Origin: Auanema rhodensis | Lineage: Eukaryota; Animalia; Nematoda | Assembly: GCA_964057225.1 (NCBI GenBank) | Contig: OZ059898.1 | Location: forward strand, 4,340,001 to 4,404,000 | DNA: 64,000 bases | Direction: 5' to 3' | In this document: positions 13 to 56,889 of the stretch, piece after piece | Layout of the letters: each line of letters opens with the position of its first letter | Position numbering within the stretch: position 1 is the first letter of the stretch | Made by a program: the position numbers and the translations under genes | Notes under the pieces: generated by a model | What the model saw: the letters and a program-made list of their open reading frames with translations, nothing else | Told to the model about the DNA's origin: nothing | The model's database searches: none

Positions 13-477
13 CTTCGTATTTTTTCTTCCGTATGAGCTATGCATTGCTCTAAATTATCTATTCTAGCTTGTTCCATTTCAAACATCATTTTCTTTTTAT
101 TAGCTTCATCTTCGTACGTTTTTTTTAATTCATTCATGGCTGAAAATAAAGTTCACAGATTTACTATGTTTTCTTACTATATATACCTGATATCTGTTCA
201 ACAGTAATTTTGTAAGACACAGATAGAGAAGACAGTTTCTCAACTAAAATACTTTACTGATAAGCTGAAACGAACTTATTACTTACTTTCTTTTTGAACA
301 ACTTCGAGAGTTTGTCGAACAACATCTTTAGTTTTTTGACTCAGGCCAGGAGTGTTATATACTTTATGAAGATTTAAAAATGACTAAATAAAATGTATTG
401 AGAAGAAAGTTTAAAAAATAAACCTCCTGAATAGCAGCAAACTTTGGAAAATTATCCTTTTGGGAAAATGACAACAT
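13..477 (-). CDS. Unknown coiled-coil protein, 5' part (4 exons visible; gene continues off the left edge)
   Basis: ATG at 477 just after a TTTTAG acceptor. Phase-consistent GT-AG exons (~424-477, 287-383, 188-243, 13-139) give MLSFSQKDNFPKFAAIQE-SFLNLHKVYNTPGLSQKTKDVVRQTLEVVQKE-IEKLSSLSVSYKITVEQIS-AMNELKKTYEDEANKKKMMFEMEQARIDNLEQCIAHTEEKIR, which is E/K-rich and heptad-like. Family not recognised. Confidence 0.65.
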
Positions 478-4409: not shown

Positions 4410-7400
4410 ATGCTGATTGGTAGCTACGACGGCTGCAGATTCACCGAAGATCAGCAGCAAAAGCTTCAGGTTAACTATTTACAATTGTTTTTTTATTCTT
4501 AATCGTCATCATATTTTTGATGAATAATGATCAATTAATCATATTATGTTTAAACTATGAAACATGTAATAATAAACTTCCTGCTATCACTAGCCACACC
4601 TGAAGATTGAAGTTTCGTTAATCTTTGAGCTTTATGTACACGGACAAAGTTTTCCACGTGATTTATTCTCAAGCTCTGGAATGAGTACTTCATTCACTAT
4701 ACGAAATACATGTGACTTAATCGCCACATTATTATATGTAATTCATGATGTATTCATATGCTGTTTGAACTTAGCACTTCCAGTAATCTGTAAAACTTAA
4801 CAGACAATATCATTTATTCAAATGATAAATGTTATTTTAAAAACAGCTTCTAATGCAATTTGCTCTTTATTCTCTGTTCATTTTGTGTTTTGATTTTTTA
4901 AATTTTATTTTCATTCATCCGTGTGAAACGGATATTCCGAAGTTCAGATGTTTTCGCATACAGACAGAGTGAGCCGAATCAAATACAAACAGAACCGGTA
5001 GGTAGCAGCTTGTCTGTTTCATCTAAAACGATCTACGAACAATCCAGAACAGAGAGAAATCGTTATTTTCGTGAAATCTTATTCTTCAACTATGCTTGGA
5101 AGATTTCTTTTCTAATCTAAATTTTTATTTTCATGGCTCACACTGTCCACAGCCGTTTGTTATCAAAGCTTCATTTAATACTTGTATTTAACACATGTTA
5201 AATCATGACACAATGAGAAAATGTGCTTTGAAAAAAAGAAAATGTTATGATCTATCTTAACAACACTTCTTTACAATTAGGGACTATATGAGTCCAAAGA
5301 GGTATTGAAAGAAAAAAAAACGAAGATTTATCCGACACTTAAGTGTCGTGTTGTTGTTTATCTCATCTACTGATTGATGTTATTGTTGTCACGAAATGGC
5401 CTTTTCAATTTCTATTTTTTGTCTGTTCATCTCTAACACTAGTCTTACTTGGTATCTGTTTTAAATTTGGAAGATCTCCATTTAAAATACCATTCTTCTT
5501 ATAATTTGAATTTGTCTAGTTTTCTCTCTACGTGTTGATCATACATATCCCACATCTTATTCCTTTGTGTGTCTATTCTGTTCAAGAATCGATACTCTAA
5601 ACAGTTTGATCTTCAACAAAAAATAGCAGAACCATTAGTTACATTAGCAACTTGTAAACATTTCAAGAAATTTGTGTTTTGTAAATATTTAGATGAAATA
5701 ATCATATATTTGCAGAGGCAACTTGCCGATAAAATAACAAATTATGCATCTATCGATGAAATTCGAATGCTACTAGTATGTGGAGCACAGGTGTGTATTG
5801 TTATAATTTCGTTTCTAAACATCAAAGAGATAGTTATAGCAACCATTTTAAATAATTAATGAATTAATTTGTTAAATGTCATGAAAATGCTTAATTTGCA
5901 GCCCAATGAACCTGTAACACGAGGATTAACTCCATTACATTACGCCTGTTTCATTAATTATTTTGCTGCCGCTAAACTTCTTTTAAATAGAGGTGCAAAG
6001 GTAAGGGTTTTGCAGTATTTAAATAGATTCCTAAACATATACTTTATGGGTCGATGCTGTTGATGAAGTGGGATGTTCTGCATTACATCTTTGTGCCGAA
6101 CATGGACATTATCGCATGATTAAGCTATTACTTCAATATATGGAAGTAGTTCAACAATATGAAACACCAGTGGTTGTTGAAAATGGTAAATATCCTAGCC
6201 GTGATAATGTTGATGAACCATTACGTCTGGCTATTAAGGTGAAAATAGTCGTCTAAATATTGAAATATTAAAAAAGTTTCAGAACGGTCACTATGATTGT
6301 GCTAGACTTCTATTAGAAAACGGTGCTACTCCTAATGCAGTATACTTCGATGGTCCAGAAATCACACATGTTAGTCCATTGGATACCAATTTCATTGAGC
6401 TTCTGGTAAAATAATATTTTTTACGAAAATCATAATTCCATTTTGGTTTAGCTGGAATATGGCGCAGACCCAAATGTAGTCGATCGTAAAGGTATGACTC
6501 CTATAATGAGAGCTTGTCGAATGAAAAACAAAGGGATTGATGCAATTAAGTAATTTTTCGATTAGTTATAATATTTTTATATGTCATTTCAAGATTATTT
6601 TTAAAATATGGCGCTAATATCAATGCTGAAGCAGAAGAACGCCAAGATAAACGTACAGCTCTTCATTTCGCAGTCTTGAGTGGTAATGCTGAGCTAGTTG
6701 AATTTTTACTTAAGGTAAGATTGATAAATCATTTTTTTAAATATTTTCGGATCTTATTTCCAGAATGGTGCTCAAGTAAACGTTCGTAAAGAATATGATA
6801 AACCATCCGTTCTTGATATTGCTGTTCTTAAAGATGATCCAGCACTTCTAAAAATGGTATTAGATGCTGGTGCAGATGTAAATTCAGTTCATACATACAT
6901 TGGATCATCACTTCATCTTGCCGCTTGTTCTTGTAAGTTATATAAAGGTCAATTGAAAGCTGAAATATTTTTTTTGCAGTTTTAAACAATCAGTTTGAAA
7001 TTATGAAAATGCTTTTGGAAAAAGGCGCTGACGTTAACATACAACATCGATTTTCTGATGGAACATCTTTGAAAAGCCCTTTTGTCGAGTACTTCAAATC
7101 AAGAGATCATGTTAGTTCTTTGCATTAAATTTACAATCTCTTGTGTCATGCTATTCATAACAAAATTTAAATTTTAGATTGAGTCTCGTATTGTAAATTT
7201 GTTTTTATCTTATGGAGGTAGGGTGATCATGAAATCTCCAATTCATGATAATCGAGGTCAGCTACGCAATGTTCTTCGTTTAGCAGCAACAAGAGATCAA
7301 CCAGACGTAATTTAGGAACATTTTTTTCTCAAATTACTTGTATTTGCTCTTAGGTTCTGGAAAGTTTACTTGGATTGGCTGAATCATTTGATAGGATCGC

Positions 7401-52946: not shown

Positions 52947-54893
52947 TTAATCATCTAAAATTTCTTCTTTTATCTCATTATCATCTTTTTCTTTAATAAG
53001 ATTTCCTAATACTATACCAGTAAATAGTATAGAACCAATCCAAGAATTTGATTTGAACTTTGTCCAACAGTCATCTCTATTATTAATATCAACAGTTCCA
53101 ATTTGCCATGCTAAATGAGCTGCCGTTCCTAAAAATATATTTTATACAAATATATTAATATATTCTTACCAGCTAATCCAGCATAATATGGCCATGTTTG
53201 GTCAGATAAATGTCCAACAGCAGCTAAACTTCCAATCATAACACTTCCGAATGATGTTAACCAAGTTTTAGTTTTATCACCAAATCGCAATGCTGTTGAT
53301 TTCACACCAATCATAATATCGTCATATTTATCCTATAAAAATAACTATAAACATAGAGGAACATTAACCGAAAGGGGAGTGTGGAACGTTCACAAGGACA
53401 AAAAAGCAAGGCACATGAATTTTTTTTCAAAGTAATCTGAAATATTTTAAGACCTGGTGCGCATAAATCGTGTCGTAGATTAATGTCCATTGTAATGAAG
53501 CAAGGTATACAATCAAAGGTATGCTTCCCAATTCGGCACGTACAGCAGTCCAACCAAGAAGAGCTCCCCATGTGAAAGTGAGTCCTGAGAAGAAAGAAAC
53601 GTGAATTCAAAACAACTTAACATGATAGAAGACATGGAAAAAACGAAATAACAGTCACAAGCACACAAAAATTATAAATGCTCATGAGCGCAGAGCCCCA
53701 ATTTTGCAAGCAAACATTATTATGAGCACGTGATAGTTCACAACATGCACGTACAAGCAAACGTTCCAGATGCCCCAAGAAAGGAAGGAGTTCATAAACT
53801 TATAAGACCTGGTGGCTGTAAATCGTATCGTAGATTACAGTGTAAAGAACAGTGGACATATACAAAGGAAGGACTTTGTAAAAGTCCTGAGAGGGAATCA
53901 TCTCTGCCCAAGCTATTAGGACGCCCCAATTCAAGGTGGCACCTGTAAACGAAAGATGAATTTGACGCAGGGTATCTTATATCAAATATCGACAGGTGAT
54001 AAGCAATTACTACAATACGATTTATAAAATGTAGGTTAAATACATTATTTTCGAAAAAAGTATTATTCATACTAATTGAAAACGATAACTAAGGTACAAC
54101 TCACCTAGCATAAACTGCGGCCAATATGTATACCGTTTAGCTAAAGGATAGCCAATAACTAATAGCATTGATGATGCTCCTACAGCGACGCTGAAAAATA
54201 TTTCTTAAAAAATTAATACGACTAATTTAGAAATCCATACCTAAACCAATTAAGCTGCAATAAAATGGCTAAAGATGATGTTAAAAGCCCTCCTAAAAGA
54301 ACGATAGCTTCACTATTAGTCATCGAACCACATGCTAAGGGACGCATTTTTGTTCTTTCAACCTGAAAACACAAATAAATTAGAAAAAAATTTAAGATAT
54401 CTCACCTTTTTATCAAAATCTTTATCCCAAAGATCATTAATCACACAACCAGCACTACGCATTAAAAAAGCTCCAGCTCCAAATAGAGAAAGTAGGTACA
54501 AGGATGGCAATTCACCCGCAGGAGTTGCTAGAGCTATAGACCAGGTACATGGCCAATAAAGGAGCCAGGTTCCTATATAATAACATCAAGTAATTGACAT
54601 TACATTTTTGACTAAAATCAATTAAAATTAAAATTCTAACCTATAGGCTTATCCGCTCTCATTATACTTAGATATGGTTGCCATTTTTGAGGAGCTTTTG
54701 CTACTAAATCAGAAGCAGTAGGAATTCGAAACTTCACAGCTTCTGCCTAAAATTCATCTCTTGTTTCACATTTCTCTCAAAAGCATTAGACTTTGACTGG
54801 ATTTATAGAACATTTTCTATCAAAACTAGTTATAATACTTGACGTGGATGGTCGAGACAGTAAGAAACACCTGGACAAGGTACATGTGAGCAT
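52947..54893 (-). CDS. coq-2: 4-hydroxybenzoate polyprenyltransferase (UbiA/COQ2) with two mutually exclusive exons (53809-53942 e/RQ type; 53454-53584 a/UQ type)
   Basis: [54 protein letters not shown], duplicated YDTIY(S/A)HQ exon, [18 protein letters not shown]. Mitochondrial-presequence-like N-terminus. Confidence 0.97.
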
Positions 54894-55064: not shown

Positions 55065-56889
55065 TTAAAATTCCATGCTGTCCTTTGGACGATTGGTAAC
55101 TTCTACAGTAGTTATAATTCTGCCATCTTCTGTTTCCTTAGACTCCAGCTCACGTCTAACCTCTGGTGATATAAGGTAATGTCCTTGGAACTAAAACAAG
55201 AAATGCTTTTAGCTTATGAATTAAAAATTACTCTGATCAGATCAAGAATGCTTGCTTTCTGAGTTTCATTCAAATCATTTTTGTAACGTTGACAAAGAGC
55301 TAAAAGACATTGATGCCATAATACAGGCATGTCTCTTTCTTCATTCTTCATTCTATAAACAACAATATATTCCACTAAAACTTCATGATAACATACCTAA
55401 TAAAATGAGCAGCAACAGCGTCAATGGCCTTGTAAGGTAAGGCATATTTTTTATCAATGAGAGCGCGGAGGAAAACAGAATTTGCTCCAGTATAGGGCAT
55501 TTCAGCAATCTGAAACCTAGATATTAAGTAATACTTTCATACAAAAAAACCTTGAGCATGGCAGCTGCGGCATGGAACATAGGAATTGACACTTTTGACA
55601 AAACCGATCCAAATATCATAGCTTCACGTAATGTACAAGTTCCAGACTAAACATTAATCAATAAAAAAAATAAAAAGTACAAAATTACTTCACAAAGAGG
55701 TAGGATCATTCCTTTGAAGAAAGCAGCCGGCTTGTACATTGATTTACATAATGCTTGATACAAATGAAAATTAAGTTTTTTAAATTCATCAATATCATCT
55801 CTTAAGCGGGGTAAAAGAACCAGATTATAAAATCTATAAAGCACGCAAGCTTAGAACAATATTACATGTCCAGTAAAAATACCTTTGACACATTCGAGGA
55901 TTCAAATTTGAAGCAAATATTCTTGTAGCTTCGTACACAGCTGCAGCTGACCAGTTATCAGGGTCAGTTAAACTAAAATCAAATATTTTGATATTAGTTA
56001 GAAATAAGAGACCTACTAAAGAATTTGTTCCCAATTAACCATTTTTGGAATAATTTTAAAAGCCTTAGGAATTTTTCCAGAGCGGTATCTAGCCAGAAGT
56101 GTACCTACTTCTTTGAACATTTCCACTACTTCAGGATCTAAGTCTCGGATCTTAAATATTAAATACGACGTTTAATACGCTCACTAATTCGATCAAACAA
56201 ACATTGAACTCCTGAGGATCAACAGTACTGAAAGAACACTCAGCATCAGCTTTCTTTTGCTCGATTTTCTCCTGAACGACTTCGTATTTTAAAATTCATT
56301 TCCGAAAGTATATACCTGAATAATATCGTACAGTGTTTTTTGAACAGGGGCATCCTCCTTTTTAACCATAAATTTGAGCAATTCTTCTTCATCTTGAGGG
56401 TTAATTTCCTATCAATATTCAAAATAAAACAAGAGAATGAGAATAATGATGTTACAATTATTTGATCGTCATAGTCGTCGTCGTGATCAGGAAAATCATC
56501 AACATCAGAATCTTGATCTTTTGCACCTAAGCTAACATGTCGTAATCTGCAAAATTTCCAAAAAAAATTATATGTTTAACGGTAAAGCAGACCTTTTATT
56601 GGCATCAATGTTAGTTTCATCTTCTTCAAACTCTTCTTGTAATTGCTTACGAGCTTCTTTCAAAATTTTAGTCGATATATCAGTGGGAATAAACTAAGTG
56701 GCAAAAATAAATAAATAATTATTAATGAAATTAAGAACATACTTCTGACTTTTCATCATTTCTTTTTCTTTTAGATTTTTCTCTAGCATTTGCACGCTCA
56801 GTAACAGCATTTCCTGTTTCAATTTGCTTATCAAGAGCACCAGCAGGCTTAATAAGATCTCCTCCTTTCAATTTACGACTTTTGCCCAT
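55065..56889 (-). CDS. byn-1: Bystin/Enp1 40S biogenesis factor
   Basis: [113 protein letters not shown]. Confidence 0.96.

Follow-up and report, generated by a model that had tools for sequence, protein, structure and literature searches.

Complementary arms in the introns flanking the ubiquinone-type exon of nematode coq-2: a putative long-range RNA helix favouring the rhodoquinone isoform

In the coq-2 pre-mRNA of Auanema rhodensis, the two introns that border the ubiquinone-type alternative exon (exon a) carry complementary arms whose pairing would loop out this exon together with both its splice sites. Arms are kept in a sister species, and arms of unrelated sequence occupy the same two introns in Caenorhabditis. 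We consider it rather likely that a long-range helix, maintained by selection, loops out exon a and favours the isoform containing the rhodoquinone-type exon (exon e). The choice between coq-2a and coq-2e decides between ubiquinone and rhodoquinone, the latter being needed by parasitic helminths to live without oxygen in hosts that make none.

The coq-2 locus and its two arms

The window, i.e. the whole stretch of 64 kb analysed here, carries on its minus strand a nematode coq-2 gene, identified by the translation of its exons (Table 1). Two internal exons, homologous and alike in phase, follow each other: exon e displays a Leu and a Ser where exon a displays a Phe and an Ala. This Leu and this Ser are invariant at two positions of the e exons and diagnostic of the rhodoquinone type versus the ubiquinone type (Tan et al. 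2020, PMC7434440). Exons e and a end with an identical weak donor, CAG/GTCTTA.

The splicing of the locus was read from spliced contigs of four public runs, which belong to one study, are only guessed to be RNA and offer no contrast of conditions. Nine joints were found, all with GT-AG ends on the minus strand. Four of them, each present in the four runs, correspond to transcripts that include exon e or exon a singly: constitutive-to-e (53939 to 54102), e-to-constitutive (53331 to 53808, skipping 476 nt with exon a), constitutive-to-a (53583 to 54104, skipping 520 nt with exon e) and a-to-constitutive (53331 to 53453, skipping 121 nt). No e-to-a joint is among the nine joints of the four runs, in contigs that can miss rare forms. 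The share of e, estimated by contig depth—a poor measure—is about 0.27-0.59, varying with the joint pair and the run. In addition, a contig (53557-53837) spans all of intron U in 4/4 runs, while U0 is without coverage and D is covered in just one of them.

Table 1. Features of the coq-2 locus, in the order of transcription (positions in the window)
Feature	Position	Strand	Description	Basis
Upstream constitutive exon	54105-54190	minus	Donor spliced to exon e or exon a	RNA joints
Intron U0, 5' of exon e	53943-54104	minus	162 nt	RNA joint
U0 element	54010-54023	minus	AAAUCGUAUUGUAG; 14-bp complement to exon e, 3' part (53833-53820)	Lead only
Exon e, rhodoquinone-type alternative	53942-53809	minus	134 nt, phase 3n+2	Translation GATLNW...YSHQ
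Intron U, between e and a	53585-53808	minus	224 nt; site of the upstream arm and of a conserved block of 44 nt	RNA joints
Upstream arm, intron U	53776-53757	minus	GGGGCATCTGGAACGTTTGC	Sequence read and duplex structure
Parts of the upstream arm	53776-53773; 53768-53757	minus	GGGG; 4-nt loop side; UGGAACGUUUGC	
Conserved extension directly 3' of the upstream arm	53733-53756	minus		Alignment with JU1783
Motifs within the extension	53749-53744; 53746-53738	minus	UGCAUG; AUGUUGUGA	
Exon a, ubiquinone-type alternative	53584-53454	minus	131 nt, phase 3n+2	Translation GLTFTW...YAHQ
Intron D, exon a to next constitutive exon	53333-53453	minus	121 nt; holds the downstream arm	RNA joint
Downstream arm, intron D	53393-53374	minus	GTGAACGTTCCACACTCCCC	Sequence read and duplex structure
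Parts of the downstream arm	53393-53382; 53377-53374	minus	GUGAACGUUCCA; 4-nt loop side; CCCC	
Downstream constitutive exon	53170-53332	minus	Acceptor common to both alternative donors	RNA joints

The original prediction had placed the arms at 53776-53757 and 53393-53374, which is exactly where they are found on the minus strand. The upstream arm lies 33-52 nt into intron U, i.e. after exon e, and the downstream arm 61-80 nt into intron D, 41-60 nt before the constitutive acceptor. The structure announced for them was reproduced by RNAduplex: a helix of 12 bp (9 contiguous Watson-Crick pairs, 2 G-U and 1 C-G), a 4x4 internal loop and 4 G-C pairs, with an energy of -22.7 kcal/mol. The identity of the exons and the geometry bear out the further claim that the exon enclosed with its two splice sites is of the a type. 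The arms were also said to be GC-rich within AT-rich introns and the flanking introns to be unusually long; we indeed found 60% G+C in both arms versus 38% and 31% in the introns, and lengths of 162, 224 and 121 nt for the introns beside the alternative exons versus 41-68 nt for the constitutive ones.

Within the 64 kb the motif occurs only at the two arms, and Rfam gives no match for them down to E = 1, so that the motif was taken neither for a dispersed repeat nor for part of a known RNA family. The motif being present only twice in the window, we found no set of several selectors competing for one docking site. Neither did U0 hold a complement to either arm above chance level (P 0.4-0.99 for U0-U, 0.55-0.83 for U0-D), and a second selector looping out exon e was rejected.

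Judged on the window alone, the pairing of the arms is only marginally better than chance. Compared with dinucleotide shuffles of both introns, a Watson-Crick run of at least 9 has a P of 0.09 and a run of at least 12 with G-U allowed a P of 0.12-0.14; the duplex energy of the whole introns is -42.6 versus -31.6 +/- 4.2 when shuffled (P = 0.016). The superiority of the duplex over shuffles, on which the original prediction depended, thus holds for the whole-intron energy but not for the length of the helix. In the fold of the 476 nt running from the donor of e to the constitutive acceptor, the arm helix belongs to the minimum-energy and centroid structures, though this region is no stabler than its shuffles (z -0.63). 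The pair probability of the helix is 0.7-1.0 in the 476-nt and 1021-nt folds and about 0.01 in that of the whole pre-mRNA of 1950 nt, where each arm takes local partners. Single-sequence folding, being so dependent on the context, is therefore not decisive, and we dropped thermodynamic support from the full pre-mRNA.

Conservation of the pairing among nematodes

Among the COQ-2 proteins found, that of Auanema sp. JU1783 is the nearest, with an identity of about 82% in the alignable exons. The whole gene of this species (locus L001) was aligned against the window. In the constitutive introns and U0 the two species show no likeness beyond that of shuffles (z -1.4 to 1.3, the value of U0 being -1.4). 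By contrast intron U is conserved with a z of 5.6, which falls to 1.3 without its 44-nt block, and intron D with a z of 6.4, which falls to 2.6 without the arm. As far as the alignment tells, it is the arm blocks that account for nearly all of the detectable intron conservation between the two species.

In JU1783 the upstream arm is GGGGCTAATCGGAACGTTCGC (L001 7120-7140) and the downstream arm GTGAACGTTCCTCCCC (L001 7495-7510), the latter with a 12-nt block identical to that of the window. The inner helix is of 11 bp, one U-G having become C-G and one terminal pair being lost; GGGG:CCCC is retained, the internal loop turns from 4x4 to 6x1, and the energy is -21.3 kcal/mol. When the conserved blocks of U and D are shuffled and their duplex energy compared, their complementarity exceeds what composition explains, with a P of 0.004 in the window and 0.01 in JU1783. 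For the Auanema pair, RNAalifold places the arm helix outermost.

Both arms are thus present in a close relative, as the original prediction demanded. Its expectation of conservation together with covariation stood for the first part: both arms are kept in JU1783, but there is almost no true covariation within clades, which for Auanema is judged on two sequences. No alignable arm helix contains a both-sided change; the changes are one-sided, apart from the lost terminal pair. Further close relatives were sought in several ways. A search with exon-sized proteins gave only fragments at 72% identity or less, a representative search peaked at 74%, and a full-length search with the JU1783 protein gave no other close genome. 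Two metagenome pattern scans yielded no match for the first and 78 matches for the second, none of them with coq-2 exons.

Some elements beside the arms deserve mention. The motif AUGUUGUGA of the conserved extension is also found 3' of the upstream arm in Caenorhabditis. RNAalifold suggested that a block following the upstream arm, GUGCAUGUUGUG, pairs the 3' end of exon a, which we rejected (P 0.11 and 0.39 versus block shuffles). UGCAUG as a common Fox-1 site was rejected too, for its position is inconsistent across genera and the GCAUG of Caenorhabditis belongs to an extension of the helix (see below); as a Fox-1 site for Auanema only, it is a lead. The duplex of the U0 element with exon e has an energy of -21.3 kcal/mol, equalled by 0/120 shuffles, and in JU1783 8 bp of it remain, with two both-sided changes.

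Exon e lies 5' of exon a in every fetched nematode locus where both could be placed, i.e. all but that of P. pacificus (L009), which shows a single exon-6-like match, split. In U, GGGTTACGGTAGG is common to C. elegans, C. briggsae, C. nigoni and C. brenneri, and so is CCTACCGTAACCC in D; the two form 13/13 Watson-Crick pairs. For this arm pair P is 0.001 in the last three species; in C. elegans, which has longer introns, it is 0.023, and the arms are at BX284603.4 6938187-6938199 (upstream) and 6938624-6938636 (downstream). In C. remanei the pairing consists of 10 bp and 4 bp separated by a bulge of 4 nt, and has one additional C-G pair on the outside. The RNAalifold structure of these five Caenorhabditis has the arm helix outermost, and the helix is extended by a UGC 5' of the upstream arm, which pairs the GCA of a conserved GCAUG 3' of the downstream arm. 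C. bovis has a different pair of 17 bp, GGTGCATTTTGGAATCG with CGATTTCAAAATGCACC (P 0.03); the pair of C. angaria, of 12 bp, is weaker and not significant alone, its TTTTGGA/TCCAAAA core being common with C. bovis. In N. brasiliensis, the only parasite examined, nothing above chance was found in U (1745 nt) and D (316 nt). Apart from the arms, intron U of Caenorhabditis contains several other conserved blocks.

Three unrelated arm sequences are thus found in the same two introns, bracketing the same exon, and the Fisher combination of one P per lineage over these three lineages gives 2e-5 to 3e-4. The arms of Caenorhabditis are non-palindromic and have no motif in common with those of Auanema; across species, the distance from arm to splice site goes from 33 to 454 nt. 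Alignment across nematodes speaks for the original prediction, in the form of different but equally placed arms in Caenorhabditis. With these arms and those of JU1783, sequence comparison gives good support to a pairing of the two introns, kept by selection, that would loop out exon a.

Putative role of the helix and rival explanations

The mechanism that we propose is the following. The arms would pair in the coq-2 pre-mRNA, and selection would keep their helix in Auanema-type and Caenorhabditis nematodes. In vivo the helix would enclose exon a, its acceptor and its donor in some 360 nt of looped RNA, and the weak donor of the distal exon e would be brought beside the acceptor of the constitutive exon that comes next. 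The result would be the skipping of exon a and the making of the rhodoquinone-type mRNA; with the helix unformed, exon a would be available, and the formation of the helix might itself be modulated. The layout of such pairings is known to favour the distal exon at the expense of the looped one, with zip-2 as a precedent, and the helix is therefore taken to promote e-to-constitutive splicing; this direction of its action is drawn from analogous systems. Of the interpretation initially put forward, the selected pairing looping out exon a is well supported by the JU1783 and Caenorhabditis arms, while the promotion of e is what we infer. Altogether, the helix probably has a part in the choice of ubiquinone-type or rhodoquinone-type enzyme, and it may behave as a switch.

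The effect of the helix would be on the e:a ratio rather than on exclusivity. As an enforcer of the latter it is unlikely, because both exons are 3n+2 in length, aberrant forms in C. elegans are cleared by nonsense-mediated decay (NMD) and no second selector was found among the introns. In C. elegans the aberrant forms of coq-2 rise in an NMD mutant, so that the fidelity of mutual exclusion is NMD-dependent, and double inclusion does occur and is removed by NMD (Kuroyanagi et al. 2014, PMC4165533). The frame-shifted products of double inclusion or double skipping would most likely be cleared in the same way in Auanema.

A first alternative is that the conserved blocks are linear binding sites of splicing regulators, intronic enhancers or silencers, whose complementarity is incidental; for example one protein could bind GAACGUU in both introns, beside UGCAUG (Fox-1/ASD-1 type) and UGUUGUG (CELF/UNC-75 type). 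The conservation of the arms as sequence, with almost no covariation, would fit this view, as would the conserved UGCAUG and AUGUUGUGA that adjoin the upstream arm and the other conserved blocks of intron U in Caenorhabditis. Moreover the AACGTT core is palindromic, so that two direct copies of one motif pair automatically over 6/12 bp. However, the non-palindromic flanks of this core (GG:CC, YGC:GUG and GGGG:CCCC) fit a reverse complement only, not a direct repeat, and the complementarity of the blocks is above composition chance in both Auanema. Besides, the arms of Caenorhabditis, neither palindromic nor similar in motif, nevertheless pair perfectly in the same introns, and the GCAUG that follows their downstream arm pairs the UGC that precedes the upstream one. 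We thus hold this explanation for improbable.

It is equally doubtful that the helix is real but has another main role, namely the back-splicing of exon a into a circular RNA, the definition or protection of exon a in favour of its inclusion, or the blocking of e-to-a splicing. Flanking reverse complementary matches do promote both back-splicing and skipping in C. elegans (PMC8330042). The absence of an e-to-a joint, and the contig spanning intron U in all the runs where U0 and D are hardly covered, would also suit such roles. On the other hand the contigs list no backward joint, in probable poly(A) libraries in which rare or non-polyadenylated circles are invisible. Double inclusion also occurs in C. 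elegans before its removal by NMD (PMC4165533). The variation of the arm-to-splice-site distance among species, for its part, argues against a direct masking of the splice sites.

In a broader reading, to which we also give little credit, coq-2 would carry a device of several RNA helices, conserved across rhabditids in its architecture but not in its sequence, where the arm helix hides exon a, a second helix hides exon e, and their balance sets the UQ/RQ ratio. In Caenorhabditis exon e may pair a conserved block of intron U, crossing the arm helix; in the window it may pair the U0 element. The balance could respond to the elongation rate, to temperature, or to hypoxia-regulated helicases or RNA-binding proteins. 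If true, such a device would be a riboswitch-like decision point for anaerobic metabolism.

That the complementarity of the arms is a chance match without function is very unlikely. The P of 0.09-0.14 obtained from the single window, the picking of the pairing by eye from 64 kb and the loss of the helix in the fold of the whole pre-mRNA would all be expected of a fortuitous match. Against this, both arms are conserved in JU1783 while the neighbouring introns are randomised, two further and unrelated classes of analogous arms exist in Caenorhabditis, and the combined probability over the three lineages is low.

Least credible of all is an action of the arms as DNA, i.e. as two palindromic transcription-factor sites nGAAnnTTCn serving as intronic enhancers—a motif which we take to resemble a two-unit heat-shock element: GAACGTTC fits it in both Auanema for the downstream arm, and in JU1783 for the upstream arm as well, but the upstream arm of the window reads GAACGTTT, GGGG and CCCC fall outside such a site, and the arms of Caenorhabditis bear no resemblance to it.

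Significance and relation to known systems

The closest published work is that on the a/e splicing of coq-2 itself (Tan et al. 2020, PMC7434440), which deals with the same gene, the same e-then-a order, the Leu/Ser signature and the expression of both isoforms. It differs in that it describes isoforms and their regulation by life stage, with no cis-acting RNA element; the arms would be one. RNA structures are mentioned by these authors only for mrp-1, citing Yue et al. 2017 (PMC7434440). The original prediction had stated that no cis-mechanism was described for this choice, and in the searchable literature we likewise found no cis element or pairing in coq-2.

If true, an arm pair looping out the ubiquinone exon would be the first handle on the control of the isoforms. 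The same layout in C. elegans, with its perfect 13 bp, makes the idea directly testable there. For anthelmintic purposes a caveat comes from N. brasiliensis, a parasite with a strong switch in which no arms are detectable. Beyond coq-2, nematodes would offer here a clear case where the sequences of the arms are wholly different between genera while their pairing and placement persist.

The docking-site layout of 14-3-3 xi was reportedly described by Yang et al. in 2011. Systems of this docking-site/selector kind (exon 5 of Drosophila 14-3-3 xi, Mhc, Dscam and srp; nematode mrp-1, cited in PMC7434440) resemble coq-2 in their homologous exclusive exons, alike in phase, and in the placing of two complementary elements, one just 3' of the distal variable exon and the other in the last intron, next to the constitutive exon; with the proximal exon looped out by their pairing, the distal one comes to the constitutive acceptor, in a conserved arrangement. 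In coq-2 too, one arm stands beside a variable exon, and the intron adjoining the constitutive exon holds its complement. Unlike these systems, coq-2 has a two-exon cluster and one arm pair only, with no competing selectors; its arm sequences turn over between genera; and its exclusivity, in C. elegans, is at least partly NMD-based (PMC4165533).

A second likeness is with nematode zip-2, where a 13-nt reverse complementary match lies in the introns flanking the skipped exons and its role was shown by its deletion (PMC8330042). In both cases short reverse complements (12-17 bp) flank a skipped exon in nematodes and are conserved among species, and the arms of C. elegans coq-2 are also of exactly 13 nt. 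In the window the matches are in both introns flanking exon a, and a linear joint skips this exon in the four runs. The difference is that the exon bracketed in coq-2 belongs to a mutually exclusive pair, so that its skipping gives a second functional isoform. Nor is a circular exon-a RNA known, in a searchable literature where no paper combines coq-2 and circRNA. The kind of mechanism, whether docking-selector or reverse complementary match, is well known; coq-2 would be a new case of it, as far as the searchable literature tells.

Predicted pairings of exon e with the flanking introns

In Caenorhabditis, a conserved block of intron U, the intron between the alternative exons e and a (ACCGTG.TGCGGTG.TGGTGG), is predicted to form a helix of -28 to -31 kcal/mol with the interior of the rhodoquinone-type exon (exon 6e), and shuffling of the block gave P <= 0.005 in four species. 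This helix crosses the Caenorhabditis arm helix, i.e. the pairing of an upstream arm in intron U with a downstream arm beyond the ubiquinone-type exon a, and may therefore compete with it. C. angaria displays a different helix between exon e and intron U (-34.1 kcal/mol).

In the window, the element AAATCGTATTGTAG of U0, the intron upstream of exon e, shares 14 bp of complementarity (13 Watson-Crick pairs and one G-U pair) with the 3' part of this exon; the duplex, at -21.3 kcal/mol, was matched by 0 of 120 shuffles of U0. Its counterpart in the sister species Auanema sp. JU1783 is down to 8 bp (locus L001, 6908-6915 with 7070-7077), and this remnant carries two both-sided changes that keep the pairs. 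The U0 pairing could hide the acceptor and the body of exon e.

Positions of the pairing elements, donors and motifs in coq-2
Feature	Positions	Strand	Remark
Weak donors of exons e and a	53803-53811 and 53448-53456	minus	identical, CAG/GTCTTA
Conserved intron-U block with inside of exon 6e	L010 (C. elegans), intron U 525-545 with exon 6e 87-107		same in Caenorhabditis loci L004, L006, L007
U0 element AAATCGTATTGTAG with 3' part of exon e	54010-54023 with 53820-53833	minus	14-bp complementarity
UGCAUG and AUGUUGUGA	53738-53749	minus	directly after upstream arm

Intron U in RNA and donor sites

A single contig (53557-53837) spans the entire 224-nt intron U in all four RNA runs, at a depth of 6-11 versus 7-45 at the splice joints; U0 has no RNA coverage, and intron D, which follows exon a, is covered in one run only. 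The coverage of intron U could reflect slow removal or a dead-end product retaining the intron. Both alternative exons of the window end on one weak donor, CAG/GTCTTA; JU1783 retains GTCTCA and GTCTTC at these places, and the exon e donors of Caenorhabditis (GTAGAG, GTGTGG, GTGTGT) are also unusual.

Gene order, exon layout and motifs beside the upstream arm

In the window, the start codon of coq-2 is preceded, at a distance of about 170 nt, by the end of a gene on the same strand (about 55066-55200). Among the nine nematode loci retrieved together with upstream sequence, eight (L001-L004, L006-L008 and L010) have bystin as the gene immediately upstream of coq-2, an arrangement that probably represents a conserved operon. 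In Pristionchus pacificus (L009) the a/e layout may be different, because tblastn gave one exon-6-like match only, split in two, and recognised no separate a-type exon.

By its sequence, the UGCAUG downstream of the upstream arm is a candidate motif of the Fox-1/ASD-1 type, and the neighbouring AUGUUGUGA, which has two mismatches in JU1783 and is found after the upstream arm in Caenorhabditis as well, resembles the UNC-75/CELF motif.
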